A stretch of DNA of 64,000 bases from Aplysia californica (Eukaryota), in assembly GCF_000002075.1 (NCBI RefSeq), contig NW_004797643.1:33085-97084 (forward strand), written 5' to 3'. Both the position numbers and the translations under genes were made by a program. Numbering within the stretch: the first letter of the stretch is position 1; the number at the start of each line of letters is the position of its first letter. Positions 11,675-34,400 of this stretch are shown here, piece by piece. The notes beneath the pieces are model-generated. The model ran no database searches and was not told the DNA's origin. It worked only from the letters and a program-made list of their open reading frames with translations.

Positions 11675-14600
11675 CAGGTGTGGACTGGCCTATGATGGGC
11701 ATTTGGGCAATGCCCCTTGGGCCGGTGCCGAATGGACAAAGTGGGCCGGTGCCGAAGAGGAAAAGTTGGCCGGTGCTGAAAGGACAAAATGGGCCGCTTG
11801 GTTAAAAAAAAATTGTCTTCAGATTACTGTGTTTATAAGACCGGTACATGTGTATATCTACTCCTTTTTCTTCAACGTTTAATTAAGAAATCTACTTGTA
11901 ACCTCGGCGGAAGAAAAAACGTTTTAAAACGTACGAATGTCTATGTCTGCTTTCTAGGGGTTTTTTTTACGTTGAGTAGAAAAAGAATCATAATTGCTTT
12001 TTCCAGCACTGGTAGGCTACTCGTATCTACCATTGTTTGTAGGCCTGAATGGATAAGTAGTAAGGGATAGATCTAAGTCAAACCACAAAAAAGAAAAGGA
12101 GGTGCGGAGAAGGAACGCGATCGAAAGAAAAAGAACTATCTGAAAGTGCATCAAAATGCCGAAATATTTTGAATACATGTATCATCATCCTTCAGAAGAC
12201 AGATTATATTAGAGTGGTGCAACGATATTTCATTCGTGAAGACGGTTCTAACAGATGGTGGCTATTTTGCTACAAAGACTCCCATGCATTTCACTGTTCT
12301 GTCTGCTCGGTGTTTTCTGCCACTTCAGACATATCCGCATTTCTTGGGGGGATGAAAGACTGGCGACATGTACATTCTCGTATTGAACAGCATGAACGTT
12401 CATCTTTGCATCTGCAATGCTCAACAGCATACCTGGTTGATAAAAAACAATCAAGCATTTCTGACGGGTTGGGTAAGGACTACTGTGATGAAGTCAGAAA
12501 GAAACGGCAAGTGATGAATCGAGTTATGGATGTAGACTCATAGGCAAGACGGGACTAAGCTACAGAGGAAGTACGGAAGAGGCAGCCTACACTCTGGACA
12601 ATGCAGAAATTGACCATGGTATTTTCCTGGAAATTGTTAAGTTGCTACACAAATATGATTCATACACAGCTGGTCATCTCTCTCGCGTAGTCCATGGCAG
12701 CAAGACAAAAAATGAGAAGGCAAACGGTTCAGGCAAGAGGCTTATTTGTTACATTTTTGTCCAAAACTACTGTGCCGTCTATCATTACGGTTATTCGGGA
12801 TAAGATCTGTTGCTCCATTTCGGAAGACATAACAGACATGTTTGCTGCGGAAATTGACACAACACAGGACATAGCAACTCAAGACCAGTGCTCCATTGTC
12901 GTTCGATACGTGAATAAAACTGGCAACATCCAAGAAAGATTGGTGAGCATTGTGAAGTGCGAAGAAGCTACCGGCGAAGCTCTTGTGCAGATTGTTTAGG
13001 ACGTTATGCAAGGGTTGAATCTTGACCTCAAACAAGGCGTTGGAGACGCAACAGACGGTGCAGCAAACATGCAGGGACACTAAAGAGGTTTCATTCAATA
13101 CTCTCCTTTCCTTGCATCTGCGTTTGTTGCCATTTTTTGTCCAAAAGTTGCCACAAAAAGTGGCAAAAGTTGCCAAAAAGGTTGCCATTAATTTTCAAGG
13201 TTTCAACTCTCTGTGACGACGTATATATATATATATATATCAATATGTTGATAGAGGTAACAATCTAAAGCCCCAGAATTTCTTGTGCTCTGTTTTAAGC
13301 ACTCAGAATATCATTTGTAGTCACCCAAAGTATAAAAACGTGAAAAATAAAGGTTTCACCACAGAATGAAATCAAAATTAGAACAGCACCAATAAATAAC
13401 CACAAAAATTATTAGGGCGCCTGTCCACCTATCCGAAGATTGGCTGTTTTAACCCTAAACGTGTGTAATTCAGGAAAAAATACGCCCACAGGATATTACA
13501 TGTAAATTATGGAATCACACACAATTGGGCCGTGCCAGTGCCAGTGTCAGTATTCGGTTTTGGTGGAGACACGCTCTAACAAAACCCTTTTTTTTAAAGG
13601 GCAGGAACAGCATTAAATTAAATGACATTACACTGTATAAACACACAAAAAGAAAAACAAACCATCAGAACAGTTTTTAATAAAATTAACACACCAAAAA
13701 ATTAAAACACAAAAAAAGAGGGGAAAACAAAAGACATACACAGCAATATAGAGCTACATGTAGTACGTAATGTAATGTACAGTACTTATAATATAAGTTA
13801 TATTCTCCGCATGAAAAGAGATACACTTGGACATCTTAAAACTTATCAAGATACATGCCTAATATGTTATGAAGTGTCTTTGTTGTTTTGTCTTTTTGTT
13901 TAAAGGTAAAAATCGCGGCCGCGACCAACGCAGATGCTAGGCTTTCAAGCAAAGCTCCAATGCAGAACCATGTTTGGTACCACGCTCATGTGTTGAATTT
14001 TGTTGTTTCGGAGGCCACAATAAGTGCTGTAGTGAACAGTGCATCACTATTTACATCGATGAACGACATTGCAGAGTTCTTCTGGAAGTCTTATCAGCAG
14101 ATCAACATCTGCAGCAGGCACTCGACAACTATGAAGCGTTTGGGGGCCATTGGTGAGACCAGATAGTGGTCAGAAGATGTTGCCTTAAGGAAGGTGTTTG
14201 GTTCTTTCAACAACCCATCAGAAGCTGTTTGTTGAAGTGAACACCAGCCTCAACACTGTACTTATTGCTGACAACACCCAAGCAGTCATGGCGGACTTCG
14301 AAGCTCCTCAAAAGGCAGCAGCAAAGTTTGTTCAGAGGGTAAATCAAGTAAATGATGCACTGAAGGAGAGCGGGACAGATTCGTTCCTGGAAGAGTCGCT
14401 TCCCTTGAAACGGCAAAGACGACGCAGACGAATTGATGATGAATTCTGTACAGACGAAGCTACATCAACAGCTGACCCAATGAAGAAATATCGTATTGAA
14501 GTTTACAATCGAATTGTAGACACGCTTGTTAACAGCATTGAACAAAATTTTTAAAAAATTTGCAGTGCCTAGATCGTTGGCTGATCAGTCCCTTCTTCAT

Positions 14601-15175
14601 CCAAGAAACTTCGGTGAAGTCCCATCAGAGGCTATGGAAGAGCTGCAAAAGTACTTACTGAGATTTGACGATATCGTCACCGCTGAAGGGTTGCGAACAG
14701 AATTGCAAAGCCTTGGAGAACAATGGAAATCGCCGAAGCAGTCAGCTGCAGACCACAATGAGGTGAAAGACAGCGATATTGACAGTGAATTAGAACTAGA
14801 ACTGAGCGCACAAAATGTTTCAAGTTCCACTGTTATATATATATGATGTATGTATCTCATGCAAAGCTTGCCCACTCTGCTTTTACAAGGTCAATGTGCT
14901 ACTCAAGTTGAACCTCTTCACTAATGCTTGCAAAGGCATTGAGGTTGCTTTCAAGCTACTACTAACCCTGCCTGTGTCAAAGGTTGCATGCGAACGGTCG
15001 TTTTCTGTCCTGAAGAGAATCAAAACCCCTCTCCGAAGCACAACGACACCGGAACATCTGATTTGATTTATACTGATGTCAGTGGAAAATGAGATCTTGA
15101 CCAGACTGGACAATGAATTTGATGCTGTGGCCGCCAAAAGCAAAGAACTTCGCAGTCATCTACTCTCTCAGGTAG
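11675..15175 (+). mobile_element. Degenerate hAT DNA transposon (ZMYM1-like/DUF4371 transposase pseudogene)
   Basis: CAGGTGTGGACTGGCC left end with gggccggtgccgaa subterminal repeats. Frameshifted peptide blocks KRKGGAEKER, a TTF-like CSVC...HERSSLH, GLSYRG, DTTQDIATQDQCSIVVRYV, DGAANMQG, HAHVLN, ETR and the dimerisation motif LLTLPVSKVACERSFSVLKRIK. Right TIR not found. Confidence 0.88.
13114..13937. mobile_element. Inverted-repeat-flanked insertion nested in the hAT transposase
   Basis: GCATCTGCGTTTGTTGC at 13114 pairs with GCGACCAACGCAGATGC ending at 13937; the insert separates the ANMQG..RGF and RLSSKAP..HAHVLN blocks. Confidence 0.6.
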
Positions 15176-15499
15176 GCTATGAGAATTTGTTATTTAAAAA
15201 AAATTAGTCCTTTAGTTCCCCAAATCGAAGTCAGTCCTACCCTCCTCTTTTTACAACATGGGACTGTCAGTGCCCCACTCTTCTCCCGCTTCTAGCCTAC
15301 TCAACAACCTGAGCGCACGTACCCACATTACTGCCACTGGTATGCGTATTTACATCAGTAGAGAAATTCCAACATTCAACGTGGATATATGATGTATTAT
15401 CAAGAATTTAGGAAAGTTCAAGAGCTCAGCAGTTTCACTTAAAGGGAAATAATCCAAGCAATACGTTATCACGTTATCATGTTTTGTGCACAGTTGTTG

Positions 15500-15850
15500 T
15501 TCTTCGACCTGTTCCCAGTTCCCGCGGGGAACGTAACCATGCGGGAGTTTGCGAGATATTGTGATTGAGATGAGAATACCTAGGTTTTCTTCGAAGCAGC
15601 CATTTTGTATTTGATAAAATCCTCATCTGGTGTTGTTCCCACCCTGGTAAGTACCGTTCGTCTTAAAATGTTGCTTATTTATCATGTACTTAGTACTTTC
15701 CCAATGTATTGTGGAAAACTATATTCTAGAATTCGTAAACATGAAATTCCTCGAACAGCTCTACACGGTAAGGAGCTGTGAGAGGCTGAAACTTTCGTAC
15801 TTTTTTTTGTTATGAAACTTGTTACGAAACTTTGGCGCGGGATACCCGTT
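15500..15850 (+). promoter_or_regulatory. CpG-rich promoter with E2F-like and YY1-like sites and a 5' splice donor
   Basis: TTCCCGCGGGGAA 15519-15531, GCGGGAG 15541, GCAGCCATTTTG 15596-15607, CTG|GTAAGT donor at 15646/15647, TTTGGCGCGGGA 15831-15842. Confidence 0.6.
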
Positions 15851-16027
15851 GTTACCTTATAATACGCGGCTGTTGGTTAGTAGATCTATTTAGTCATCTA
15901 GTGTTTAGTGTTTACACTTTTCTTCCGCATTTTCTCGACCGAAAAGTGAAAGAAGACACACTACTGTGGCTTACAATAATTTGTTCTCATCATTTACCAA
16001 AGTGTCGAGTGAATTTCTGTTACCGCA

Positions 16028-18100
16028 ATGCAAACCAGGAGCAGGTCTGGTTCAGGGCTGAGAGACTCCAACTTCAAGTTTCAACTGAAGGCGAAGGGTG
16101 TCAGTGTCCCAATCTATAAAGTGAACCTTGCTGCGAGTGCAGGGGAATCAGATCTTCCTCTGTCTCGTTCTCGTAGTCGTAGTAGTAACCGAGTGTCTTC
16201 AACTTCAACCTCACCTGGTTCTGGATTTGGCAGTGGCAGAGACAGGATGTTTGATAGTCGTGATAGGAGAGAAGTGGAAGGCAAGAAGGCTTTTGTAAGT
16301 GTGAGTTCTAGATCTAGAAGCACGAAACGCCCACTTTACCAAATCCACGGAGATGTCTCTCAGAAAGCGAGAGCGGAACTGGCAGGTGAAGGTGGTGGTG
16401 TGGGAACAAGACTTGGTAGAGGTTTGTTAAATAAAAGACGGAAGGTCGATTGGAGTATGTATAATTCTGAAGTACAGGAAAAATCCAGTTGTATTCTCGA
16501 TAGTGAAAGCAAAGAAAATATCAGGACCAATGTAAGCGGCAGGAATTCGGATAGTACGAATAATGTTGATCAACTGGCATTCAAAAACAGTGATCATGAC
16601 AAATGTGGCACGGTAGAGAAGGATAATATCGGTTTTGTCAAGGTTGCTGAAGATGAATCTGATATTTCAGACGATGAAAATGAAGAATCTTTAGACTATG
16701 TTCGTATGCGTGAAGCGAACATGAAAGCAAATGAGGAATTCTTTGCTAGCTTGGGAATGGATGAAGCCAAAAAACAGCTTCAGGCCTCGGCACTGAACAA
16801 ACCTGAGAAAAAGTACACTCCTACTCAAAAAGGGCTAAGAATTAAGAAGGAGCCAGAGATGATTGTCAGAAGGCAAAGTATGAGAATTCGTCGTATTGAT
16901 CCGAAGGGAACTCCTTTGCCAGAGCCTGAGCCGGTTGAAGAAAATGTGGCCGAACCACGACTGCCAGACGGGCCTGTACCCATGAAAGACTGTATTTTTT
17001 CGAAAGCAGAAAACATCACAGAGAAAGATGTTACATCATTTTCGACTGTCATCTGTAAACAGACTTTGGATGGGAAATCTGCCTCATCGAACATTACGTC
17101 CCTGACAAAGTCACTGAACAAAGTGTGCATGAATGAAAACAGAGTTGCCAAAGTTGTGCCAGGCAGGGTATTCTCTGTATCATGGCACCCATCGCCGTCA
17201 TGTTTGTTAACCGCTGCTGGTGACAAGTATGGCCATGTTGGTTTATGGAATGTTGGGAGTAGTGGGAGAGATGATGTTGAAAGTGTGTTGGTGTTCAAAC
17301 CTCACATTAAGCCAGTCAGCCATCTCTTCTTCCAACCAGGTCATCACAAGCTGTTCTCGTGTAGTTATGATGCCACTCTCCGATGTGGAGACTTTGAAAA
17401 AGGCGTGTTTGACGAAGTTTTTTCAGTACCAGAACAAAACGATGACTTGCTTCGCAATTTTGATTTCATCGATGACGGCAACACAATGCTTGTGTCTCAG
17501 TATAGCGGCATGGTTTCAATGGTGGACACTAGAACGCCGGGAAGCTCTGCAGAGCACGAGTATAACGTCAGCAGAAAGAGCCTTCGAACAGTCAGCGTTC
17601 ACCCAGTCGATCAACATTATTTCATCACTGCTGGGGTGGAGGCAAAGATCAACTTGTGGGACCTTCGTAACATCAACGCTAAGACACCCAAACCACTCCA
17701 GACTTTGTCGCACCACACCAAAGCAATCTCCAGTGCTTATTTCTCTCCAAATGGGGGCAAAATTCTGTCCTGTTCCTCCGATGATACAATTGTTGTGTCT
17801 GATGTCGGGGAAGGAATACGCCTGAAGCTTTCAAAAAGCATTCGCCACAACAACTGGACAGGGAGGTGGCTCACCAACTTCCGACCCACATGGCATCCTT
17901 TCGTGGAGGATGTATTCGTGACGGGCTCCATGCGGCGGCCTCGTGAGATTGAAATTTACAACACCAATGGAACTTTGATCAAAGCCTTGCAAAATGAAGA
18001 CTACCTGGGCTCTGTTTGTAGCCTGAATGAGTTCCATCCTCAGCTGGAGTGTGCTGTGGTCGGGGCCAACTCCAGTGGAAGACTTCACGTGTTCATGTGA
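16028..18100 (+). CDS. WDR76: WD repeat-containing protein 76 (CMR1/DDB2-related), intronless ORF of 690 aa
   Basis: Conserved Y..MREANMKANEEFFASLG helix, RRQSMRIR, KVVPGRVFSVSWHP, AAGDKYGHVGLWN, SYDATLRCGDF, IRHNNWTGRWLTNFRPTWHP and GANSSGRLHVF C-terminus, all typical of WDR76/Cmr1. Confidence 0.93.
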   Translation: MQTRSRSGSGLRDSNFKFQLKAKGVSVPIYKVNLAASAGESDLPLSRSRSRSSNRVSSTSTSPGSGFGSGRDRMFDSRDRREVEGKKAFVSVSSRSRSTKRPLYQIHGDVSQKARAELAGEGGGVGTRLGRGLLNKRRKVDWSMYNSEVQEKSSCILDSESKENIRTNVSGRNSDSTNNVDQLAFKNSDHDKCGTVEKDNIGFVKVAEDESDISDDENEESLDYVRMREANMKANEEFFASLGMDEAKKQLQASALNKPEKKYTPTQKGLRIKKEPEMIVRRQSMRIRRIDPKGTPLPEPEPVEENVAEPRLPDGPVPMKDCIFSKAENITEKDVTSFSTVICKQTLDGKSASSNITSLTKSLNKVCMNENRVAKVVPGRVFSVSWHPSPSCLLTAAGDKYGHVGLWNVGSSGRDDVESVLVFKPHIKPVSHLFFQPGHHKLFSCSYDATLRCGDFEKGVFDEVFSVPEQNDDLLRNFDFIDDGNTMLVSQYSGMVSMVDTRTPGSSAEHEYNVSRKSLRTVSVHPVDQHYFITAGVEAKINLWDLRNINAKTPKPLQTLSHHTKAISSAYFSPNGGKILSCSSDDTIVVSDVGEGIRLKLSKSIRHNNWTGRWLTNFRPTWHPFVEDVFVTGSMRRPREIEIYNTNGTLIKALQNEDYLGSVCSLNEFHPQLECAVVGANSSGRLHVFM

Positions 18101-18472
18101 AATGTGTGTTGTCTTGTACATTAGTGTTATCTTATGAACCCAGCTGGGTGGAGCATGCCGTTTTTACAAATTGTTGATGATGTGTAATCTCTATGTCGGA
18201 CCTTTTTGTTTTCATGAAGATAGTTTATTGTCAAATGATGTAAGTTTGAGATTTGTTTGTGTGAGAATTTTTTACTCTTGTGGTTCAACTTATCAAAATC
18301 AAGTTGTTCTAAACTTGGCTAATTTAACTGATTATAATGTATTCTTTGGAATATTTCTTCTTTTAAGTACCATACTTTTACTTTTAGTATTTCCACAGGA
18401 ATTTTAGGAAGGGGGGGGGGTGCATTGTGTTTAGTCATGGGAGTAATGCTGATTTTAAGGAATCTCTAGATA

Positions 18473-19268
18473 CAGTAGAATACACGGCTCTAGGGGGACT
18501 TTTGGTTCCAGCAGAAAAATCCCGCTGTAGGCGAGTTCCTGCCGTAGGAATACAAAGGGGAAATTACCGAAAAATTTAAAAAAATCCACATGATTACATC
18601 CCTTCCATATATATCAATCAAATTTGCGCTTTAGATTAGTCTTCTTTTCTTGTCAACTCCTTTGATTATAATTTTGGATTTTAATTTGAGTGAGAAGCAT
18701 TTCCTTTTTCGTCTTTGTTTGAGTTTGAAGCCATCTTTTCCTCGACTTTTTGCTTTTGTGCTGTCTATCATACTGGTAGGCCTATATAGTAGGACTGGTA
18801 AAGTGGATGTGTGCGTATGCCTGAGCATCAATGATCGCAATTCAATGAATCAGGAATTATACACTACACACTCTCCTCTTCTTTTACTTTTTGGCTTAGC
18901 CTCTAGGGCTATGGCCTAATGCTCTTTATACGGTACTGAGCGTCAAGGCTAAGGCACATCACTCACTTTAAATTTTGGAGTGGCTCATGTAACGCGTCTC
19001 TCTGCTGCCTGCCTCACCTTACTCATTACTGGACTGGCCAATCACACGCCCCACCCCTGGATGCCTGTTTGGATCCCGCCTACAGCTCCCCAACCCACTT
19101 CCCCACAGATAGAGCTCGCTCGATCTCTCCTGCTGTATTCAAGTTCGGGCATTTCTGTGCCCCGTTAAAGCCGAGCACATATCGTTGAGTTTGCATAGAG
19201 AAATAAAAGGGGGATTCCGGTAAGGTCCCGCTGTGCACAGCGGTTGCTGCTATAGTCATGTTTTACTG
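18473..19268. mobile_element. Tc1/pogo-type MITE, family A copy 2
   Basis: TA|CAGTAGAATAC...GTTTTACTG ends; internal similarity to 6586-7245. Confidence 0.75.
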
Positions 19269-20060
19269 AATAGATCTACAACTTTTTTGGAGTGGTTCAC
19301 ATAACGCGTCTCTTTCCGCACCATCTCTCTCTCTGCCTACCGTGTGCCCCACCTCACTCATCACTGGACTAGCAAATCACAACTCCACACCACTGACTGC
19401 CTGTTTGGAGCCCGTCAACAGNNNNNNNNNNNNNNNNNNNNNNNNNNNNNNNNNNNNNNNNNNNNNNNNNNNNNNNNNNNNNNNNNNNNNNNNNNNNNNN
19501 NNNNNNNNNNNNNNNNNNNNNNNNNNNNNNNNNNNNNNNNNNNNNNNNNNNNNNNNNNNNNNNNNNNNNNNNNNNNNNNNNNNNNNNNNNNNNNNNNNNN
19601 NNNNNNNNNNNNNNNNNNNNNNNNNNNNNNNNNNNNNNNNNNNNNNNNNNNNNNNNNNNNNNNNNNNNNNNNNNNNNNNNNNNNNNNNNNNNNNNNNGGG
19701 GGGCAAGGGTTTTCTTTCATGCAGAATTTCAGAGGGAAGGTGTACTTCACAGGGAAATGAAATTATTGCAAAAAGTTTTGAATTTTGCTCCAAATTCACC
19801 GAGAGATAGGACGTAACCTGCATGTAATGTTTTGTAGGCCACCAGAATTGGCAAATTTTGCTAACGTCTGTGACATCCATGGTGAGGGGAAAAGGGTAGA
19901 ATGCGAAACTAAAAATGAATCATTTTAGGATCTTCATAGTATTCATAGGGGGCAGTGAATGGATAAAGCATTATTTAATATAATACGGTACTTTCACATT
20001 CTTTGGTTAAAAAATTTAAAAGTTTTTGTACTGTTTAACCTCCATCTCTAATTTTTAATA

Positions 20061-20782
20061 CAGTCTGTGCCGGCATGAAACACGTTTTGGACTCAAGCAC
20101 GCTAAACGGCTCTTACCGAATTTTTGCTATTATCTATAAATTACACGCCTTTAAGCACAGTAGCTTTGGTTTCAGACACGCTTCATGTATTATTAGACAG
20201 TCTATATTTTCATGATGACCCATCAAAGTTCGAATAGTCTACACTGCAGCAGTTAGTGTGTAAAAGAGAAACACAAAGAACACAAGTGATGGAGACACAC
20301 ATATACACACGCATGGAGAGGCAGGCAGAGAGATGCACATAGCCGTGCGCATGGATATGGTATCTAGCCTATGGCAAAGCTTCACACAGACTAAAGAAAT
20401 ACTGAGTCGAGGAGACGAGAAAGGGAAGCTGGCTGCGATTTCATCTTTGCCCCTCGCTATCCAATAATCTTGATATGTATCATGAGGTGGGATGAATTTT
20501 AAGGCGGTGGTATGAATGTGGTACGCACAGGCAGTGTGTAGGCCAAGGGTGCTGCATCGTGACTTGCCATCTAAATTAAGTTTTCCTTTCCCATTCGACC
20601 ACAAAACAAACGAACAAAAACTACCTTGGCAGATAAAAATGACAGCGCACACTTTTACGTGTCCACTACTTTCGAACTCAGGAAATTTTCTATGACAATG
20701 TCGACTTCGCACTAAGCACGCTTCGACATTAAGCACGCTTATGCTTTCTCCCGATGACCATGCTTAAAGCCGGCATGGACTA
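20061..20782. mobile_element. MITE with terminal inverted repeats
   Basis: CAGTCTGTGCCGGC...GCCGGCATGGACTA ends; internal ttaagcacgc repeats. Confidence 0.55.
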
Positions 20783-22148
20783 CATGATCTGTTTTTCATG
20801 CACAATATTATAACACGCATATGTAATCACATATTCGTCGAACTGTGACTGGGGTCTGTTTTTTTTTTCCTTTGAATCTTTGTAAGGTCAGGTGTATCCC
20901 TTGGACAACTGAAGCAGGTCCTGACGAATTCGAGCTATCCGTGTTATAGTTATACTTATACTGTATTTCTTCATTAGTTGAATATATCACATGTCATTAT
21001 AATACATAAAAACGTAGTTAGTGATAGTTGCTGCTGCATTATTATATTAACTTTTTTGTTTGTTACTGTAACATTATCACACAATGAACGTCAGAGTCCC
21101 CAACAAACTATTGTTGCTGCGCTCAGGGCAGATTTTTTTTGGTTAATTTTTTTTATCGCTTTGTTTTGTGCCACTGGCTACACCTGTGTATTTTCATCCC
21201 ATTTTTATAAAAAGTTTTTAGCTTTTATTGAGTTTTAATACACTTACATTAATTTTTTAGTTGACTACCAAATATACAGCATAAAATTTACTCATAATTC
21301 ATCATGCTAAAACTCATAGCACTGTTAATATACAATGTACAATGTGAAAAGAGTATCAGGATGTCCTTTTCCCCTTTATCATCTGTCTCTATAGTTGGCA
21401 ATGTTTTATTTTATTTCTTCCAAGAGAGTGTAGTTCCAAAGTGTCTTGCGTAAAATTTGGCCTTTCTACTGTCTGGCACATAACAAACTCAAAATAAGGG
21501 ATAGAAGCTTTTTTTTTTTATCCGCTTACCAACTATGGATGTTTGGAACAGATATTATTTGTAATGTGTCCAATCCCCAATGTGTTTTGAGATAACTGTG
21601 CTCAACTGTACGTTTAAATTCTTAACTTTCTGTGATGTGTAAGTTAGGGTAAGTGTTGAGGTTGCTTATGTTTGATTGTATTTTCATAGTTTCATTACTG
21701 CTTCTGCTTTACACAGTTTTCAACTTTAACACATTTTGGTCTTTGACCGTTTAGAAGGGTATGGGTGGTTATTAATATTGAAGAATGCTTTTTTTTTTCT
21801 TATTATCTAAAATTTTCTCTATTTTACCATTAAACCAGTGTTTTTAGAGATTGGATTGTAATTGTCAGAGGTTCTGTGAGTTGAAATTTTTTTTGAACTT
21901 TGTTATAATGCAAAAGATCATTTTGATTTAAAGACTAATTTTTTTTTTCAATGTTCATTTGTGTGTGTGTTCTGGTATACATTTATTGAAAATTACATGT
22001 TACTGCCAGATCACAGGCTTTGTCAAATGCAATCTGCTTGAAATCTACAAGTTGTGAGTGGTGAGGTGGGATGGCAAATACAGTATTTGTAAGGTGTTTC
22101 TTGAATTGGCAAAACCTGGCTGTTTACTATAAATTGTGGGGGTTTTTT

Positions 22149-24350
22149 AGTAAGGTTTGATCAAATATAGTGGCTTATTATTTCCTTTTTGTTTTTATCC
22201 GGGTATCTAAAAGTCAACATATTTCAATATAGTTTTTTTTCCCCAAGGAATTGGTCAAATACTGACAGAGGTTAGCTAAATGAAGAATAAAATCTGAACT
22301 AATTTGGGTCAAGAAACTTGAAAAGTTGAATTTCAAAATGTTCTAATTGCTTTGTTGGAATGATGAATGAAGTATCATGTTATAGTTGTTTTTGTTTTTT
22401 AAGATTTGAATGTATTGACCACATTGACTGTCCTGAAGAAGGACTTCAAGATTGTTTTTGTGTAAAAAAATGTTGCATTTTTGTTTGTTGATTCTTTTTC
22501 ACTTCCATGAGAGTATTGAAAGATGTTTCCGTTCTAATGTTTCGTGTGTATTGGCATTCTTACCTGTTTTGGTGCTAAGATAGAAACATTTATTATAATA
22601 ATAACAGTGGAAACCTGATATAACAGGGATGGTGGGACCAGACTGACATCGTAGTTTTCTGCATGGAAAATTTCAAAATTTTGCGCAGAATTTTACCCCC
22701 AAAATGACCAAATTCTGCAAAAGTTCTGCTAAGATTGCGACCATGTCTAAACTTCTTTTTCTGTACAGCTTTAAATACAGTGGAATCCTGTTATAACGAG
22801 AGGGAGGGGACCGGAGCAAAATGTCCGCTATAGCAGGATTCTCGCTATAAGGGATCCAGTAATAAATTCAAGGGAAACTGTAAAGTAGGCCTAGTCTATG
22901 GGTTTGGTATTCTGTTTATTTCCTTTTGCTGTCTCCCCTGATGATGATTTTGTTTCAACATGACCTCTGGGTCTTACTTGATCAAAAATCGAATCAGGTT
23001 TCTTTCTCTAGCGCTAGATCTAACGATGTTGACTGACAGCTCGGCGTTGGCGATCAGAAAGAAATGGCTCTGGGCTAACTCACCCGCTGTGTTTTCCCCC
23101 TACCCCACCACACCCTGTGGTGCATTCCGTCAGCTTGCGCACGTCACACATTCACTCCATCCATCACATTGCTGTGACCTCTCCATCCCTGCATCGGAGA
23201 AGTGAGAGGCATGGTAGGCCTTGATAATCTAAACTTGGCATACGCTAGCCTATCCTGCGATGCATTCTGTTTGTCTGTGCATGCCACACCCTCCCTACTC
23301 AGTCGCTCTGGCCTTCAATACTTCATTGTTGATACGCAATGGGCTCCCCCATTCTTTGTTTCGCTAGATCACCTACTAGTTTGTCAACTGGCGAGGTTTT
23401 ACATTATGTATAATTGGCCCATGCACTGCGCACAGCAGCATCAATATTCCGCTATAACCGACTCGTGTGTTTGTCTGATTGCGCTCTATAGCAGTATTTT
23501 ATTTACAAAGGAAAAGAGGAAAAAACGGGGTTTTAGAATAGGGTCTTTATAACAGACTTCTCGTTTTTTCCGGACTCGTTATAAGTGGACTCCACTGTAA
23601 GTACCAATTAAGTACCAATTAATCATAACCTGATAAGCAGCACTACAGACACCTTACATTTTTTTTGATAACCAGCAACAGTAAGGTTTGATCGAATATA
23701 GTGGCTTATTATTTTGTTTTTGTTTTTATCCGGGTATCTTTAAAAGTCAACATTCAATACAGTTTTTTTCCCCAAGGAATTGGTCAAGTATTGACAGGAT
23801 AGCTGACTGAAGAATGAAATCAGAACTAATGTGGGTCAAGAAACTTGAAAAAGTTGAATTTCAAAATGTTCTAATTGCTTTGTTGGAATGATGAATGAAG
23901 TAGCATGTTATAGTGTTCTTTTTTTGAAGATTTGAATGTATTGGCCACATTGACTGTCCTGAAGTAGAAGGACTTCAAGATTATTTTTGTGTAAAAAAAA
24001 TGTTGCATTTTTGTTTGTTGATTCTTTTTCACTTCCATGAGAGTATTGAAAGATGTTTCCGTTCAAATGTTTCCTGTGCATTGTCATTCTTACCTGTTTC
24101 GGTGCTAAGATAGAAACATTTATAATAATAACAGTGGAAACCTGATATAACAGGGATGGTGGGACCAGACTGACATCGTAGTTTTCTGCATGGAAAATTT
24201 CAAAATTCTGCGCAGAATTTTACGCCTAAAATGACCAAATTCTGCAAAGATTGTGACCATGTCCAAACTTCTTTTTCTGTACAGCTTTAAATATATAAGT
24301 ACCAATTTAGTACCAATTAATCATAACCTGAGAAGTAGCACTATAGAAAG
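22149..24350. repeat. Tandem duplication of a ~680 bp unit: copy 1 at 22149-23670 carries a MITE, copy 2 is at 23681-24350
   Basis: Near-identical blocks running from gtaaggtttgatc...gtggcttattattt to tcataacctga...gcactac/tag. Confidence 0.85.
22778..23597. mobile_element. Tc1/pogo-type MITE
   Basis: TA|CAGTGGAATCCTGTTATAACGAG...CTCGTTATAAGTGGACTCCACTG|TA. Confidence 0.85.
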
Positions 24351-24529
24351 TACATAAAAAAAAAAAAAACGGCAATTAGCAGCATACAATCTGTACTATT
24401 TTTTAGAAATGCAAGCCCACAACATAAAATGCTAACAAAAGTGTTACCCAAAGAAATGAGACACTATACCGGTAATGTCAAAATCAGGTGAGCTGGCACT
24501 TTGAGCTAATAGTATGTCACTGAATTGAT

Positions 24530-24772
24530 TGTCAGGAAGCGTTGAAGACAAAAAAGACAATTGTGTTGTTTGAGAAGAAAAAGTCGTAGGAAGATGGGTA
24601 GAATATGTAGGAGAATTATTTGAAGATAATAGACTACCCCTACCACAACCAAGCAACAACAACAATGGTCCCAACATTCATAAGTCAGAGGTAGAGATCG
24701 CAATTAGAATTAGAAACAGCCCAGAAGGAAAAGCCCTGGGTGAAGGTGAAGATGGCATAAACACAGAAATGC
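24530..24772 (+). mobile_element. RTE-clade LINE fragment (linker between endonuclease and reverse transcriptase)
   Basis: Translates to EKVVGRWVEYVGELFEDNR...GPNIHKSEVEIAIR...GKALGEGEDGINTEM. Confidence 0.75.
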
Positions 24773-25089
24773 CCATCCACCGTCGTTGATTTACGGGTGT
24801 GGTCAAGTTCCACATTACATAGACTCTACGCTCTAACAGAACAGTTTTCCGCCAAACACATGTGTGCTTTTGGTAAAACGAAGCTGGCGTTCAGCGGCAT
24901 TTGTTTTCAACGCTTTCTTTCCTTTAAAAAATGTATCCATTTTTGCTTAAAGACAAATTCGTCTCGCCTGTACTCCTATACTAGTACGTGCACAATAGAA
25001 TCTAAATAGAAGGCAGTGCTACTGACTGAATTGTTTTTAGGCCATTCCCGAAGGATGTTTTTTTTTCTTCTATGCATTTTTTTCTTCTT

Positions 25090-25400
25090 TTATGCACAGA
25101 AGAATTGTAAATTATTGGTTGATCAATGTCATGCTCACTCTGTGCCGGAATAACATATGGAGCAGGGGGGAACTGCTGCTTTTTCTTTCCTCATCCTTAC
25201 TAACGTCGTTTTTCCTCTACTTCTTTTGTATGTTTGTCGTTCTCTTGTGAACTGCTATTTCCGGTGTGCCTTGTAGTAGAAGCAGACTTTGCACTGTTGA
25301 GGCTAGAGAGGTGAGCAGTGTAAGCCTGATTCCCCGTTCTCTCTGTTGACATCTGCCCCTTGGCGCTCATATGTACATGTATGCAATTGTGAGCTCCGTA
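25090..25400 (+). mobile_element. Dispersed retroelement 3'-end fragment, family R
   Basis: Reverse-complement copies at 39825-40200, 43545-43810 and 56310-56360; ends in a ggcgctcatatg...cgtaaa stem-loop-like tail. Confidence 0.65.
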
Positions 25401-25964
25401 AATCTTATTAATACAGGGTTCCCACCATGGACAAGATCGGCCGATGTTTGTTTTCAGTTTCAGGCGATCGAGTCGGGCGATCGGCCCGATCCAGCCGTAG
25501 TGGGTACCCCGTTATAAAACAATCAAGAATCTAGATCTAGATCAATTTTGTTTCCCCCAAAAAAGAGCGCTCTAGGTTCCGGTGAGAGGGAGGTCATTCT
25601 AACGTTGTCAGCTCACAATTCTACGTCTGAAAGTTTGATAATGCCGCAAAATTTTTCAAAATTCCTCGGCCGAGCCACGGCTTTTCCATTTTTCCGCTGC
25701 AGTGCCCGCTGAAAACTACGATCTTGCCAGACCAGAGAAAAAGTCCTGTTAAATCAGAAATGCAAAGGAAGTAAGCATTTGTAGACTAATCCAGCTGTAT
25801 TTATTCATGGGTTGTTTCCCATGGCCTGCGCATGACACATAACTCATGGGTGTAGTTAGGCTTAGGGCTAGATCGAAGTCTGCAGCACGTCGCAGCCCTC
25901 TCTCGCTTTACCTGCTGTGTGTGCTTGCAGTGGTGTGGCTTGCATGGGCTTGCTCCCTCACTGC

Positions 25965-26002
<38 letters not shown>

Positions 26003-26232
26003 CCATATTTAACGAGCCTTTGTCCCTGCTATAACCGATTGAGCTCCGATGAGGCCTTTTTATTGCCGATAACTTTTAATAGAGACAAAGAGTAGGAAAA
26101 AACGTGGATTTAAAAAATCCCAGTTTCAGTTTTTACCGGGCCTGTTATATATATATGGTTTCCACTGTATTACATATGTAGTTACGTTCTCAGTGCATTC
26201 ATTCAATTTCAGTTGAACTGTACCTAATGATG

Positions 26233-26289
<57 letters not shown>

Positions 26290-27344
26290 CACTCCTTCTC
26301 TCACTCTCTCTCACCCTATCCTATACAATCTTTTCATTTTTATGTGTTTTGGGGAAACAAGAGATATTATATGATCAAATGCATTATATTATATGAAGCC
26401 AATTTTCATTATTTTAGCTAGAATTTCTTTTGACAAGTATGAGTACTTATTATTTGTTTTCCATTGTTACTGTATGGAGTCTCGAAGTTCTATACACAGT
26501 GTTGATCAGATCATCTGTAGATCTGGTTGCTAAAATATTGTAACTTTACGGTAACACTGCTGAACTCTTCAGTGGGTACCGCTGTCGTCAGATATTCTTG
26601 TTCTTAATTATAACCCCTGGGACTATCTTCTAAGAATAGAACATCCACCAGTTACATTGTGTTCAGAAAATGTTGTAATTTCTTCACGACTTTGTGTTCA
26701 TGTTCAGGTGCTTGTATATGACCATTTGTTTGAAGTGCTGTAAAATTGTTACGCAACTGGCATCTGTGGTGTAGCTGTTATTGTAACGTCATCACGTGTA
26801 GGAGACCCATGTTTAATTCTTGAGTGGGGAGAATTTTTGTAAATGTAATCTTTAGCACTTATATGGCCTTATTTTGTTAAAAGTGCCGTGTGACTTCTTT
26901 CTTAAAACGAAGAGTATCAAAACATGTGAATGATGTGACATTACTACGGGTACGTAACTGTTACAATAAATGTTTTGTAGAGGTACTGAAGTTGGAACAA
27001 GCATATTTTATTACTCAGGAGCTTCTGTTTGAAGTATTGAATACATGTTGGTTATATAATATATTAATAACGTGTGCTTATGTGATGTCAGCAAATGGCA
27101 AATTCTCTCGGCACCCACCTGTTCAAATACTGAAGAAAAATGATATGTGCAGATGTCCTCGAAAAGATGTTTAAAATAATGTTTGGAGGTACATAATGTA
27201 GTCACAAAACTTTAAATTTTTCTTAAGTGTTCGAAAAATCAAACTTGACAACTATCAAGGTTATGAAAAGTGATGATGTTTGCCCCTTTTGGGCCCTCTG
27301 TTACTGTTACCTCAGTTAATATCATGCTATACTACAGAATGGAT

Positions 27345-27515
27345 GGCCCTGGTTTGAATCCCAGACTGGGAGTTTTCGAGATCGGGTAGTTTTGTAAAGT
27401 TTTCATGGCTCTCAACCAATTCAACTCAGTCCTATCAGAGACGGATGTTAAATTCGGAGGTCCTGCCTCTTAAATAACCTACTATTAGTCTATGTTGAAA
27501 GGGACGTTAAACCCA
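27345..27515 (+). mobile_element. tRNA-derived SINE with a V/Meta-like segment
   Basis: GGTTTGAATCCC B box; gacggatgttaaattcggaggtcctg; gggacgttaaaccc tail. Confidence 0.55.
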
Positions 27516-28968
27516 TACACTTTTGATTAAAATTAAAAGGTATGTTTTTGTGCTTCAGTGTGAAGTCTGTTACTTTTGTCCTGTCATGTAGTATGGAGTA
27601 ACACTGTATGAAGCCTACTTGCATTGTCTTTTTCTACTTTTTATTGATGTTTATTCTCTCCCAATATTTAATGGTTAGAGACTTTAGTTTCCAAATGCAC
27701 TGGTTTGTTTTCTTGCATTCATTAGCTTTTTGTTCTTTGTCCGAAATGTACCTCATGTACTGGCAGCATTTACAGGACCACGTTTTTGACCCACCATAGT
27801 ATGTTGCTGACAAAATAAAGTTTAATTTTGATACTACATGAATGCGTGTGTGTGTTTTTATTTGACCTCCATGTATGTATACTTGTAGCGCATCAAATGT
27901 TGATTCAAAAATTGGGCCTAGAAATTTTTTTGAAGCATAGATCTTACTCTAGTTGATCTAGTGGTTTGCTCATTTCTCCTATCAAACATCTATTGTACTT
28001 ATCTCTCAACCTTCTTTTACCATGTATAATGTTTGTTGCCGTCTTAAAATCTTGCAACACCTCAAATCTTCGGCACTCAATCTTATATAATTTAATTGTG
28101 TTGGAAATACCGTAAAACTTTTACTTTAACGAAACAAGTGTTTACACTTAGTATCAGAACAAGAAATTTGCAGCCCTGATCAGAGAAATGCTTTGCACAA
28201 TGACTCAGTGTCATTGTGCTGTGCTTCGTCCATGGGTGTTTGGCAGGTGCTTTAGTTTTAGTATGGTTTGTTCCTTCTTTCCTATGAAACATCTATCGTC
28301 CTTATAAAATCTCTCCTCCTTTTCTTTGTATACTTCTCTCAAGTGTCTAGTATGGTAACACCTGTAATAAAATGATGTTGATGTAGCTAGCTGTGGGGAT
28401 AAGGGAAGTGATGATGAGATGATGGAAGCAAAGATGATGTTGATGGTGTGGATCGTGGATTTCCTCTGATGATGCAAGCGCTCAGGTTTGAAGAGGGTTC
28501 CGAGTTTGTCACTCCCTAGTAATACCTCTAAACTCCGGCACTTATATGACTTTATTGTGTTGAAGTGCCATAAAACTTACTAAAACAGTAGGACTAGTGC
28601 TAGTAGGAGAATGTCTGAAGGGTCCATCTTTCGTCTGTTTTACTCATAGTCATAGACTTACAGTTTAAGAGAAATATCTGCTGACTGCTGTCTGATGTAC
28701 TTTTGGTGCTTTATGTAGTAGGCTACCCCATTTGAGTCAAATGAAGGATAAAGTGGAAAGGTGCTGTGCACTTTCGGCTTTTACTAGACTGGTGTTTTGT
28801 CTTTCATTTAGGTGTAATAATAGCATGGTCCGTGGTGAGCATGCTTGGCTTCGAAGTTTTCCTGGAGAGCAAAGAGTGGCAGCCATGACAGTGAAAAGTG
28901 TAGGGTTACAAATCTTGTGGTGTTTATACAGTTCTGTTTTCTTTTTTTTGTTTTTTGCTTTGTTAGTG

Positions 28969-29135
28969 GCGTCTGTGGTACCATGCAATGGTCAGGTGCT
29001 TTGCTGTCGCAGGCTGGAGACTCAATTTGTGATTCCCGATTGGGGACAAAATTTGTATTGAGTATCTCGGTCTTTCTGCTGAGGTGTTGTATCCCTCTCA
29101 GCGCGAGTTGGCCCTGACAGTCAGAGTCAGAAGAT
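28969..29135 (+). mobile_element. tRNA-derived SINE, family S1
   Basis: gcgtctgtggt head and the shared S1 body. Confidence 0.7.
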
Positions 29136-29397
29136 TCAGTCTGTGTTGCTTTTTCCCTACCCAAAATGACCACGGCACAATCATCGTGTCTATGTGCTGC
29201 CCTTTTCCCACAATTACAGCCAACAAACTAAATTCTCTTTCACTCAACAGAATCCATCACGCCATGAGAAAACCAGTGTTCCTAGTGGATAAACCTTAGT
29301 CCTGCACCAACTTGACCACCTCTGCACCCCCCTCACATATTAGATCCCCACCAGCCACCAGCGTTGATGGTGAGAACGAGCGAGTGACATCACCAAC

Positions 29398-29620
29398 ATG
29401 CCTTTGGACACGTTTATCTGTGGCCAGTGCCAGGATTCCTTCACCGACCTCAATGAGTTCGTGCTGCACAAACAGGGCAACTGTCCTGCCACAGCCCCGG
29501 CCACCCCCGCCCCTCCCTCCTCCTCCTCCCCGGCCCTCCCACAGGGCACCGAGGTCATCCGGCTACACATGAACGAGTCAGGGGAGATCACTGGCATGTC
29601 CTCTTTGCCAGTTGGAGAAG
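29398..29620 (+). CDS. ZFAT: ZFAT-like coding exon 1 (acceptor at 29343/29344; in-frame stops precede the ATG)
   Basis: MPLDTFICGQCQDSF..FVLHKQGNC; donor AAG|gtatgt, phase 1. Confidence 0.8.
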
Positions 29621-31402
29621 GTATGTTGTAGTATACTCTTCATTACATTACACTGTGGCATCAAAAAGAAACTTTAAAATTAAAATGTATTCTCCCAATC
29701 TTTATATTAAATACTTGCACTACTCTCTCATGCAGCATACCAATTTAAAGCTAAATAAATTCTACATTGCCTGACACATTAATATTTCAACTTTAACTAC
29801 GATAAGAGTTGCCCGAGATAATCAAAATTAACCTTAAAAAATCAGAGTGCAAAATAGTGCGAAATCAAAGAGACGATTAAAGTGTGTCCGCGGGTGTATT
29901 AAGGTACACCAGTATTGATAGAATGGACGTACATTGCTTATCATATAAATGGAGAATTTTGTCTCTGCAGTAAACAATATTATATTACGATAGTTTGAAA
30001 CAAATTGGAAAACAGATCATCACAAATACCAGTTAAAAAGTGTGAACCACCGTGTTGCGACAGTTATCAGGTTTGGATGGAAGGTTAGATTTCTTTTCCT
30101 GAGCTTGACCAAGGCTTCCTCATGCCTTTCCTTGCTGTACAGATGAGTCGATGACCAATGGATCAACCTTCACCTTCCTCAATGACGTGAACATGGAGGG
30201 AGATTTTGGAAACACGAATCTAGATGGGAATGGTGCAGGAACTGACAACTCCGCACAGACGCTGATCATCTTGAACAACTCGGAGACTGACGGACTCGGC
30301 GGGCTGGACAGTTCTGGAATGAACCTGTTAACCCCTAGCCAGAGCATGGACGGCCTGACTTCGCAGCCAGAAGGTCCTCTTGGAGGTCAAGAGGTCAAGG
30401 GTGACACACCGGAGGTCATGCCGACCTTGACAGAGCCATTAGCGCCGCCAGAGATGGGGGAGGAGAAAGTTGGAGGATTTCCTCCCAAAAGTAAGCTTTG
30501 TTCTGTGGTCATGAGATTGGACAATGTGGGGAGTATATTGCTGGAATCCCGTGTGATTTAAGTTCTGATGTTTCTTGTGGTGTGAAATGTTTCCCTCTCA
30601 GCCCAAGTTAGCTTTGACAGGCAAGGTGGAGGCAATCTGCCTTCTAAATGAGCTACATTGTGTTGATGGAGACCTAAAACACCAATGATTGCTCTTTTGT
30701 TCTGTTTTTAGTCTGGCATTCATGTCTGTTTTATTCGTTTGTTTTTGTTTTTTCCTTTTTATCTGTTTTTGTCTGGCATTTTTGTCTGTCTCATACTTAA
30801 TGCTTTAGTTTTTATTCTTTCTTGTGTTGTCTACACTTAGTTTGGCTTTCCTGTCTGTCTTGCTTCATACTTTGTATTTNNNNNNNNNNNNNNNNNNNNN
30901 NNNNNNNNNNNNNNNNNNNNNNNNNNNNNNNNNNNNNNNNNNNNNNNNNNNNNNNNNNNNNNNNNNNNNNNNNNNNNNNNNNNNNNNNNNNNNNNNNNNN
31001 NNNNNNNNNNNNNNNNNNNNNNNNNNNNNNNNNNNNNNNNNNNNNNNNNNNNNNNNNNNNNNNNNNNNNNNNNNNNNNNNNNNNNNNNNNGAAGTATTTT
31101 CAGAGCATCAAAACAAAACCAGCAACAAAATATTTAGTTTGGGGTTGTTTTCTTTTGTGTGTCTGGACCGTGACTGTTTTTAGAGCTATTTCATTTGTCG
31201 AGTGTCTCTTCCCTGACTATTTCCCTGTTTGTTTGTTTTTTCTGAAATGAGAAATTCATTGAAATGCCCCATTTTTTTCTTTGGCAGGTGTTTTTGATAA
31301 TTTTCTAGCTGTTTTTTTTTTTTTAGTGTGTTTCTGAAATGAGAATCATTTGAAATGATTGTTTTTGTTTGTTTTGATTTTCTGAGATTAGAAACCCATT
31401 GA

Positions 31403-31437
<35 letters not shown>

Positions 31438-34400
31438 AGATCATTTCTATAGCGCCCACTCCCGTGTAAACACAGCTCTAGGCGCTTTACTTAAATGCGT
31501 GTACGAACNNNNNNNNNNNNNNNNNNNNNNNNNNNNNNNNNNNNNNNNNNNNNNNNNNNNNNNNNNNNNNNNNNNNNNNNNNNNNNNNNNNNNNNNNNNN
31601 NNNNNNNNNNNNNNNNNNNNNNNNNNNNNNNNNNNNNNNNNNNNNNNNNNNNNNNNNCACGCGCACGCTTACACATTGTCACGAAATTAGCATAAATATA
31701 CACAATGCAATTCACATAATACATAAATGGATACATAGTCATTTACATAACATTGTACTGGACATGAATCTACAGACATAAAAATGATGTCATTAAATGT
31801 GCCTTTAAAGATTAAAAAAATTTAGACTCAGATGTTGTATGTCTCAAGGGTTGGGGAAGAGAGTTCCATACTGATGGAAATGACTTACTTTTTATCTTAT
31901 ATCATGAAACACATTGTCTTTTCAACAGAGCGAAGGGGGCGCTCAAAGACGGGAGAAGGCAAAGTGAAGGTCATTGAAGCTGTTCCCCCATCTACGCCAA
32001 AACCAACGGTGCCTGAAACCAGTAAGACTATGACTTCTCTCACAGAGGGTAGCTCATTGGCTCTATCTGTTGTTTTCTCTGGCTACCTGCCTGGTTTTTT
32101 TCTTCTCTGTGTGTCTGTCTTTTTGTCTGTTTGCTTTTCCTGTCGGTCTGTTTTCCCTGTCTGTCTGTCAGTTTTCCTGCCTGTCTGTTTTCCCCATTTG
32201 TCTGTTTTCCCAGTCGTCTGTCTGTTCCCCCACATTTTTATTTTTTGAACATCCTAATCAAACTAGCTCTCACTGGCAAAATTAAAGGCAAATGAGGAAG
32301 GGGTAGGCCCAGAGTAACCTATTAAGGGAACCTAAGCAAATTGGTAACGGGGAAAGATCAGGGTAATATAACTTTTTAAAGAGCATCCGAGCAAAGAAAT
32401 GAATGGAAAACCATGACCACTGATGTCTGCCGCAGATCTGGCACTGGATGATGAATCAAACATTTACACCACATATTCCCACACAAGGGAGCGGGGTTCT
32501 TGTGGAGTAAGGAGTGCAGGGGCTGATCAGGGTCCAAGACTGTAGTAAAGAGAGGCTAGTCACTTAAAAGAAGCAGTCTTTGCCATTTTTACAAGCTTTG
32601 ATATAAAATTAGATGTTGTCACATTGCAGTTGTTTTTTTCCCCAAGTACAACAGTGATCAATCAAACTTTTAGGACAAATTTTGCTTGCTTTTGATTACA
32701 AGACTTAGAAGCTTTTATTTCTAATTTGGTAACTGGCCCGGCAAAAGACGGTTTGTTTTGTCTCTGAAACTCTGATGGCCACCATCTGTGGTGTAGCATT
32801 TAGGGGCTATAGGTTTCATTTGATTTCCAGGTGAGGACAATTTTTATAGGGTGCCTCGGCCTTTTCTGTTGGGTTGTTGTAGTATCCCTCCCAGTTCGTG
32901 TTGGCCCTGACGGGCAGAATCGGAAGCCTGCCTCCTAAATGATCTAAACTGTGTTGATGGGGGTGCAGAAACATTTCTATTTAAAAATCAAAAGCACATT
33001 TTTATGCATGTTTCTTCTCCTCGTCAGACGCGGACGGCAAACTGGTGTGTCCCCAGTGTAAGAGAACGTTTGCCAAGGAGCGACATTTCAACACCCACAA
33101 GTGCCTGGCCACCTCTTCCTACGTCGACATCACCAAGAAGGAGATTGTGAAAATTGATTCGGGTAACTCTCGCATCTATCTGCTTTTTTTTCTTGTTTTG
33201 CGAAAAACTCTTCAAGTGTCGACGGCAAATTGAATCGGATATGAGTTTCGTTCTGTATTGTCATGGCCAATTTAATCAGGTGTAATTTGAGTGGCTATTT
33301 CAGTGTTTTTTGCAAGGTGTATATTGTTACATTTTGTTTCTAGGGAAATGTATATGGAGTAAAATTTTGTTGCCATTAAGATGTAAAGTGTGTTGTTTGT
33401 CTATGAGTGTGTCAGTGTTGTTTGTCTGTGAGTTTGTCACTGTGTTGTGTGTCTGTCAGTGTGTCAGTGTGTTGTTTGTCTATGAGTTTGTCTGTGTGTT
33501 GTTTGTCAATGAGCGTGTGTGTCACTGTGTTGTTTGTCTATGAATGTTTCCCATTCTTGTTTATCTATGAGTGTATTACCATGTTGTTTGTCTATGAGTG
33601 TGTCACTGTGTTGCGTGTGTATGTACAGGTGATGAAGAAGAGGGTCACGAAGACTTGGACGCTGGGGCACATGTTGATGAGGAGGAAGAGTTCACTGCCC
33701 CTGTTGATGAAAAGATGAGTGCTGAGAAAGAAGAGGAAGACGATGAGAAGGAAATGGACAAAGAGGATGTGGAGGAGGAGAGCGCAGACAAAAGGAAGAA
33801 GAAAAGAGGCAGGAAGAGGAAGCGAGGCGGAGAGGATGTGGAGGTGGGTACAACATTGTATTGCAGGGTCAAGTGTTGATTTTTTATAATAGATTCTCGT
33901 CTTTCACCTCCTTGCTGTTTGGAGGTTGGCGGAGGTTGGGNNNNNNNNNNNNNNNNNNNNNNNNNNNNNNNNNNNNNNNNNNNNNNNNNNNNNNNNNNNN
34001 NNNNNNNNNNNNNNNNNNNNNNNNNNNNNNNNNNNNNNNNGTGGGGTAAGACAAGGTTGGGTAGTAGCTAGGGAGGGGGGGGAGGAGGGAGGTGAGCAGG
34101 AGAGGAAGAAGGGTCATTATGAATTTTTGTATTGTAATGCAGGGAAGTCGAACATTTTTTTTAGGTTGGATTTTTGTCGGAAAACTTTTGTTCCCAGCGG
34201 CAGTGGTCGGATCAACGTTTGCAATAAAAGGAAATTTGAGGAAATCTGTAAGTTGCCTCGGGAAAGACCCGGGAAAATACATAAAAGTTCTTGAATACTT
34301 GAAAGCCAAATCCGATGTCCTTAGGTTCATTTTGTAGGTTGTGAACATTCAGCTTTTCCCGGTCTGAGAGTACGTTTCATGCGAACAGGCGGCTATGGAG

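Follow-up and report, generated by a model that had tools for sequence, protein, structure and literature searches.

WDR76, the ZFAT-like gene and the sequence upstream of them

The DNA studied here is a 64,000-nt stretch of Aplysia californica (hereafter the window, from whose first letter all positions are counted), taken from positions 33085-97084 of one contig in an assembly of 927 Mb in 4332 contigs. It contains a WDR76 gene with a single coding exon and, further downstream on the same strand, a gene of many exons that resembles the zinc-finger gene ZFAT. Concerning these two genes, the initial annotation had proposed that a splice donor upstream of WDR76 closes a non-coding exon 1 of ZFAT, which would place WDR76 within the intron that follows. 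The features on which the argument depends are listed below (CDS, coding sequence; ORF, open reading frame):

15551-15646, + strand: putative non-coding exon 1 of the ZFAT-like gene, with conservation from near 15551 in a four-species alignment and a putative start site
15598-15606, + strand: YY1-like motif AGCCATTTT, within putative exon 1
15647-15652, + strand: conserved 5' splice donor GTAAGT (CTG/GTAAGT, 15646/15647), with GTAAGT/GTGAGT occupying the corresponding position in Physella, Biomphalaria and Bulinus
15748-15840, + strand: conserved module that includes an E2F consensus besides two inverted repeats (a single strong copy in each species by nhmmer, E-values 1e-19 to 1e-23)
15831-15838, + strand: E2F consensus TTTGGCGC (TTTSSCGC type), ~190 nt before the WDR76 ATG, conserved in four species
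15815-16027, + strand: ATG-free leader of 213 nt before the WDR76 start codon, with only weak acceptors, likely the WDR76 5' untranslated region
16028-18100, + strand: WDR76 CDS, a single exon of 690 aa, stop codon included
29344-29621, + strand: first coding exon of the ZFAT-like gene (acceptor 29343/29344, 54-nt leader, ATG 29398, donor 29621/29622, GAAG/GTATGT)

WDR76 had been described as intronless, and its ORF is indeed uninterrupted over all 690 codons. The closest named relatives come from heterobranch gastropods, namely Candidula, Bulinus, Lymnaea, Physella, Plakobranchus, Elysia and Biomphalaria (51-61% identity), with Haliotis at 47%. Gastropod WDR76 proteins altogether matched with 47-61% identity (E-values to 1e-191) and those of vertebrates with 36-43% (E-values to 1e-98). 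The C-terminal WD40 propeller matched WD40 families in Pfam and its best full-propeller PDB match was DDB2 (residues 379-673), which is also the next family after WDR76. A six-frame search of the whole 927-Mb assembly led to one WDR76 locus only, the parental copy being absent. The CDS is also single-exon in Biomphalaria, Elysia, Physella, Candidula, Plakobranchus, Bulinus, Lymnaea and one further sacoglossan, giving nine heterobranch loci together with A. californica (for the other eight, the call means that the gene range equals protein length × 3 plus the stop codon), while that of the abalone Haliotis is split into at least 13 exons spread over 25 kb. As all coding introns are gone and the parent is absent, WDR76 looks like an ancient orphan retrogene which replaced its parent and was fixed before the heterobranchs diversified, the retroposition itself being presumed. 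Wholesale intron loss by another route may be an alternative origin, and a poly(A) remnant or target-site duplications would be unrecognisable at such an age.

Two genomic data sets also revealed insertion polymorphisms at 16455 and 16526 (+6 and +9 nt), both in frame and within the disordered N-terminal half of WDR76. Indels outside the CDS, at 14834, 18410 and 18643, are of 4, 2 and 1 nt and not multiples of three, which suggests by comparison that the WDR76 frame is maintained. Six single-nucleotide polymorphisms were found in the gene, two synonymous and four missense.

The downstream gene covers 29.4-48 kb of the + strand in many exons and encodes eight regular C2H2 fingers and one atypical pattern match. 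Its identity was judged exon by exon. Specifically, exon 37419-37643 had human ZFAT (2rsi) as its best single-domain PDB match, with 42.5 bits vs. ≤26 for single domains of other proteins, and for two other zinc-finger exons ZFAT was one match among many zinc-finger proteins. A basic KRGRKRKRG stretch occurs in the ORF at 33598-33879; the R-G-R-P AT-hook core was not seen. ZFAT is a plausible name on these similarities, and the gene is called ZFAT-like here. As initially read, its first coding exon opens with an acceptor (...CACATATTAG/ATC at 29343/29344) and has an in-frame stop (TGA at 29371) before the ATG at 29398. The 54-nt leader also harbors a six-codon upstream ORF (29366-29386, with ATG at 29366 and TGA at 29384), out of frame with the main ATG.

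Upstream of WDR76, the initial annotation had singled out 15500-15850 as promoter-like and free of repeats. We found that 15250-16027 (~780 nt) is single copy in the genome and that CpG observed/expected peaks there at 1.12, the highest of the 13-31 kb stretch. The strong donor and the E2F site had been located correctly, as had the WDR76 start about 380 bp past the donor: the ATG at 16028 is 381 nt after 15647, and the acceptors ahead of it are all weak, with AAG/T at 16003 as the best of them. The ATG-free stretch is there as well, since the ATG closest ahead of 16028 starts at 15812 and the 213 nt in between contain none against 3.6 expected (P ~0.024). Taken alone, a GTRAGT donor is no more than chance would give, with nine on the + strand between 15400 and 29343. 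The module at 15748-15840 is predicted to be the shared regulatory element and the WDR76 promoter, which its position and conservation make probable.

Two inverted repeats lie inside the module, at 15749-15785 (ACAGCTC/GAGCTGT) and 15789-15833 (TTTCGTA/TACGAAA). Both arms are invariant across species, with no covariation, so they resemble paired protein-binding sites rather than RNA structure. A structured RNA in the block was rejected for this reason and because no Rfam match was found in 15300-16100.

Conservation of gene order and of the promoter block among snails

The gene upstream of WDR76 was used as a synteny anchor:

98-3070, + strand: last large exon of a CAS-family (BCAR1/NEDD9-like) gene, an ORF with many YDxPP repeats

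Genes with SH3, Serine_rich and CAS_C domains also precede WDR76 in Physella and Bulinus. Comparison of gene order in related genomes showed that the succession of CAS, WDR76 and zinc-finger gene on one strand in A. californica recurs in Physella, Bulinus and Biomphalaria. The first coding exon of the ZFAT-like gene is orthologous to that of the 1401-1411-aa zinc-finger proteins encoded beside WDR76 in these three snails (tblastn E-value ~1e-20), and a polypyrimidine-AG acceptor is kept 54, 54, 42 and 43 nt before the zinc-finger ATG in the four species.

A non-coding block of ~290 nt with fixed spacing is conserved in A. californica, Physella, Biomphalaria and Bulinus. From the CAS gene to the zinc-finger exon no other conserved non-coding sequence was found in any species pair, even the two planorbids (Biomphalaria and Bulinus), and the flanks of WDR76 cannot be aligned between species except for this block. 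It starts with a GAGA..CGA patch, continues with GG(C/T)AGCCAT(T/A)TT and, 45-54 nt later, reaches the GTAAGT/GTGAGT donor. From the donor to GGAGCT(GTG) there are 125, 125, 125 and 119 nt in the four species, followed by 18-21 nt to TTTCGTA and by 36-49 nt to an 18-mer (15821-15838 in A. californica) that ends in the E2F consensus. A 24-mer of the block is identical between A. californica and Bulinus (24/24) and nearly so with Biomphalaria (23/24). Each of the four segments of ~450-500 nt contains exactly one GTRAGT, at the homologous place; the probability of finding it within +/-6 nt in two independent lineages is ~4e-5, at a frequency of ~5e-4 per position as estimated from base composition. 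The homologous donor and the zinc-finger acceptor are at L005:9427 and 13944/13945 in Physella acuta, L002:14906 and 19959/19960 in Biomphalaria and L008:13369 and 14662/14663 in Bulinus.

The block does not occupy the same place relative to WDR76 in all four species. In A. californica and Physella it precedes the WDR76 start codon by 190-380 nt. In the planorbids it follows the WDR76 stop by 3.1 kb (Biomphalaria) and 1.6 kb (Bulinus) and precedes the zinc-finger acceptor by 5.1 and 1.3 kb, respectively, and there it is conserved as well as elsewhere. Because other non-coding DNA is saturated even between the two planorbids, their block is under selection, and because it comes after WDR76 but before the zinc-finger gene, it can serve only the latter. 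Planorbid WDR76 has a partial copy of the module's E2F end, 70-350 nt before its ATG (70 nt in Bulinus). Relics of a WDR76 pseudogene were also sought downstream of the planorbid block and none was found.

Possible nesting of WDR76 and the alternatives

The reading that we favour, at a probability of roughly 0.55, is that WDR76 is nested in intron 1 of the ZFAT-like gene on the same strand, shares the promoter block with it and probably has its own start site beside the E2F site. As the RNA runs described below were uninformative, this reading is based on the comparison of snail genomes. The zinc-finger gene would start at a short non-coding exon at ~15.55-15.646 kb, bearing the YY1-like GCCAT motif, and this exon would be spliced from the 15647 donor over ~13.7 kb to the 29344 acceptor, 54 nt before the ATG. 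The conserved E2F-bearing module would lie ~100-190 nt into the intron, and WDR76 would be transcribed from just downstream of the E2F site into an unspliced mRNA with an ATG-free leader, presumably under E2F control. A start site of its own is suggested by this leader, by the weakness of the acceptors and by the planorbid copy of the E2F end. The two genes would share one regulatory block of ~300 bp, not necessarily one start site; two start sites within it seem likelier than a single transcription unit with a single start. Concerning the initial proposal for the 15647 donor, footprinting in four species lends substantial, though indirect, support to its role as the end of a non-coding ZFAT-like exon with WDR76 in the intron, the junction itself being a prediction.

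In the planorbids the two genes would have become un-nested through partial duplication or relocation, so that WDR76 with a copy of the module's E2F end now stands upstream and the full block has stayed with the zinc-finger gene. The lineage of A. californica is placed outside Hygrophila. If this placement is right, the nesting shared by A. californica and Physella would be the ancestral state, and the planorbid rearrangement would have proceeded from it.

Several points weigh against nesting. A host gene on the same strand has to be transcribed past the poly(A) site of WDR76, and the start sites given above are guesses. In Lymnaea, Candidula, Elysia and Plakobranchus, a search within 10 kb of WDR76 revealed neither the block nor the zinc-finger exon, hence the arrangement is not universal in heterobranchs. 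Additionally, the conserved 18-mer resembles a motif in a transposon family of ~1000 copies, though the flanks differ, and the adjacency of WDR76 and the zinc-finger gene depends on a scaffold join at a gap (19422-19697). Finally, reads were mapped on 14400-19400, and two poly(A) RNA runs of ~15 million reads each, both nearly empty here, placed 0 and ~2-4 reads on WDR76; 15500-16027 had none, and neither a joint nor a loose end was seen at 15646.

Two further runs turned out to be genomic DNA, with uniform depths of ~60x and ~6x and contigs up to 186 kb. A word search with the 74-aa zinc-finger exon 1 for transcript-derived protein fragments gave no candidate. Two Logan contigs (L027 and L028), considered as the source of a spliced WDR76 5' untranslated region, were discarded, being colinear with the genome or not alignable.

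The alternative that survives best, doubtful as we consider it, is that the two genes are ordinary tandem neighbours. The block would consist of the WDR76 promoter and 5' exon only, the ZFAT-like gene would have a poorly conserved first exon of its own in 18.1-29.3 kb, and the planorbid block would have been left behind when WDR76 relocated and been captured secondarily. This agrees with the location of the block 190-380 nt before the WDR76 ATG in A. californica and Physella and with the E2F sites found a short way ahead of WDR76 in all lineages examined, a stylommatophoran contig among them; the near-empty RNA runs hold no RNA for the long splice either. However, it requires two extra events in the planorbids, a new WDR76 promoter and the capture of the old one by the zinc-finger gene, and the 15647 donor would have to be joined to an acceptor ahead of the WDR76 start codon, where only weak ones are present. 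The interval in which a separate first exon would have to be sought comprises the following:

18101-29343, + strand: remaining part of the proposed intron 1 of the ZFAT-like gene, in which the WDR76 3' flank is unique to ~18407 and the rest is repeat-rich
19422-19697, no strand: assembly gap (N), non-coding, within a repeat cluster, crossed by no reading frame

DNA depth climbs from ~60x to 800-6900x from 18408 onward. The gap begins ~1.3 kb past the WDR76 stop, and because of it the proposed intron length of 13,697 nt is an estimate. No block within 18101-29343 is conserved with other species, and the lack of a second conserved block between WDR76 and the zinc-finger exon in any species pair argues against a separate first exon there. 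The same is true of the 2 kb before 29344, where CpG observed/expected is 0.32-0.5 and a repeat resembling a SINE (short interspersed nuclear element), at 28943-29133, ends 210 nt before the acceptor. This repeat and the CpG-richer spots at 20300-20782, 25150-25850 and 25800-26180 are all high-copy (~1000 to >8000 first-look candidates). No CpG-rich unique sequence was found ahead of 29344 with a repeat map that omits ~21.2-25.1 kb, and for 26.3-27.6 kb no repeat match is listed among the 40 candidates scored; uniqueness checks cover only parts of the 11-kb interval, a point in favour of tandem neighbours. Two spots in the interval were set aside. A second E2F-like site, TTGGCGC at 25360, considered as a separate zinc-finger promoter, is inside a repeat with >4800 first-look candidates, and of the CpG-richer spot at 20.5-21 kb at least the part belonging to 20300-20782 is a repeat with >1000 candidates.

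A strong GTAAGT donor also occurs after the WDR76 stop, at +140 nt in A. californica (18240) and at +58 nt in Physella (L005:11711), and is absent within ~900 nt of the stop in six other species. It was considered as a sign of a conjoined WDR76-ZFAT transcript and is probably due to chance, given that a physid relative has GTAATT and that the contig is colinear with the genome. This donor and the late poly(A) signal of WDR76 (no AATAAA/ATTAAA until 1.1 kb past the stop) may be relevant to read-through of the inner gene, or may be chance.

The strict form of what the initial annotation proposed, which we hold to be quite unlikely, has one start near 15.56 kb for both mRNAs. Splicing from 15646 to 29344 would give the zinc-finger mRNA, and either an unspliced transcript polyadenylated after WDR76 or a splice to the weak 16003 acceptor would give that of WDR76. 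It is in keeping with the single conserved promoter block, with the late poly(A) signal, which would favour read-through, and with the known expression of retrocopies in host introns as chimeras with host 5' exons (PMC4772013). On the other hand, an unspliced leader from ~15.56 kb would hold at least five upstream ATGs (15570-15812), compared with none in the 213 nt past the E2F site, the acceptors before the WDR76 ATG are weak, and planorbid WDR76 works with the E2F end of the module alone, 70 nt from the ATG in Bulinus, indicating a start beside the E2F site. Lastly, an assembly artefact, with a wrong join at 19422-19697 and two genes that are not neighbours at all, is hardly credible even though the gap stands between both genes within a repeat cluster, as the join is supported by the same order and strand of CAS, WDR76 and zinc-finger gene in three other, independently assembled genomes.

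Nesting with a shared block may be taken a step further, to a reading which is possible and in our judgement not probable. Since before the A. californica lineage and Hygrophila parted, a DNA-damage gene of essential function would have had no other form than that of a retrogene within the 5' intron of ZFAT, the two genes would depend obligatorily on one block of E2F/YY1 type with their outputs coupled, and the planorbids would have escaped by partial duplication of the promoter. The coupling may operate through the choice between splicing and polyadenylation or through two start sites. If true, this would be a natural case of duplication-degeneration-complementation acting on a promoter, not on a gene.

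Known parallels and minor observations

Most described nested gene pairs of animals are on opposite strands and have independent promoters. WDR76 and the ZFAT-like gene would resemble them in that a complete gene is placed inside an intron of another, and would differ in sharing a strand and in having the inner promoter no more than 200 nt from the first donor of the host. Retrocopies in host introns that are expressed via the promoter or 5' exons of the host offer a closer parallel, such as mouse Taf9 within Ak6 (Carelli et al., 2016, PMC4772013). Common to both would be an intronless, mRNA-derived gene in the 5' intron of an unrelated host, in the same orientation and dependent on the promoter region of the host. 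The known cases are demonstrated by transcripts and are mostly young and mammalian, whereas that of WDR76 is founded on comparative evidence. The arrangement also appears to be older than the split between the A. californica lineage and Hygrophila, WDR76 probably uses its own E2F-side start within the intron rather than host exons, and Planorbidae seem to have undone the nesting. It would be a molluscan, very old, same-strand case in which relatives differ, some being nested and others not.

Orphan retrogenes that replaced their parent are exemplified by RNF113A, MARS2 and TRMT12 (Ciomborowska, 2013, as cited in PMC4772013). WDR76 is similar to them as a single intact copy, conserved over a large clade, whose CDS is intronless compared with an outgroup ortholog of many introns. 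It differs in being molluscan and in having no recognisable poly(A) remnant or target-site duplications. Human WDR76 is listed among the genes controlled by p53-p21-RB/E2F (PMC9090780). A likeness to RB-E2F target promoters is given by the canonical, conserved TTTGGCGC 190 nt before the ATG of WDR76, which is a WD40 protein of DNA damage and chromatin. Unlike in such promoters, the best-conserved copy of the site in planorbids stays with the zinc-finger gene and not with WDR76, and the site is known here from its sequence.

If the long splice is confirmed, WDR76 would be an unusually old and clean retrogene that took over the role of its parent inside the first intron of another gene. Nested and un-nested relatives would then constitute a natural experiment on how a promoter is shared or partitioned, how a host passes the poly(A) site of an inner gene and how such an entanglement is resolved. 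For annotation, the ZFAT-like gene may have its true 5' end on the far side of another gene, 13.7 kb ahead of its first coding exon. Should the splice fail to be confirmed, there remain an ordinary tandem pair, a WDR76 that is intronless throughout the heterobranchs and a well-conserved E2F promoter element.

Apart from these species, two sacoglossans share a conserved element of ~75 nt that starts with the E2F-type site GTTACACAAGTTTCGCGCGG (L003:8409-8485 and L026:2985-3054). The element precedes their WDR76, again a single exon, by 1.6 and 6.5 kb, which suggests a spliced 5' leader or another arrangement in these animals. In A. californica, decayed transposase ORFs of the hAT type occur as frame-shifted + strand pieces at 12169-15143 and end ~400 nt before the promoter block.

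The 18-mer at the E2F end of the block has ~1021 near-copies in the genome (≤2 mismatches). These copies have flanks homologous among themselves and a C at position 6, where the A. californica locus has G, and the flanks of the latter are unrelated to theirs. On these two grounds, and because the surrounding region of ~780 nt is single copy, the view that the 18-mer is a mere transposon fragment was rejected. The Lymnaea match to it (L025:6555-6575) is of the transposon type. Finally, the dispersed repeat family to which the near-copies belong (e.g. L009-L024) carries GTTACCAAACTTTGGCGCCATTTTCT, a fusion of an E2F-like and a GCCAT (YY1-like) motif, and the same two motifs stand 230 nt apart in the conserved promoter block.

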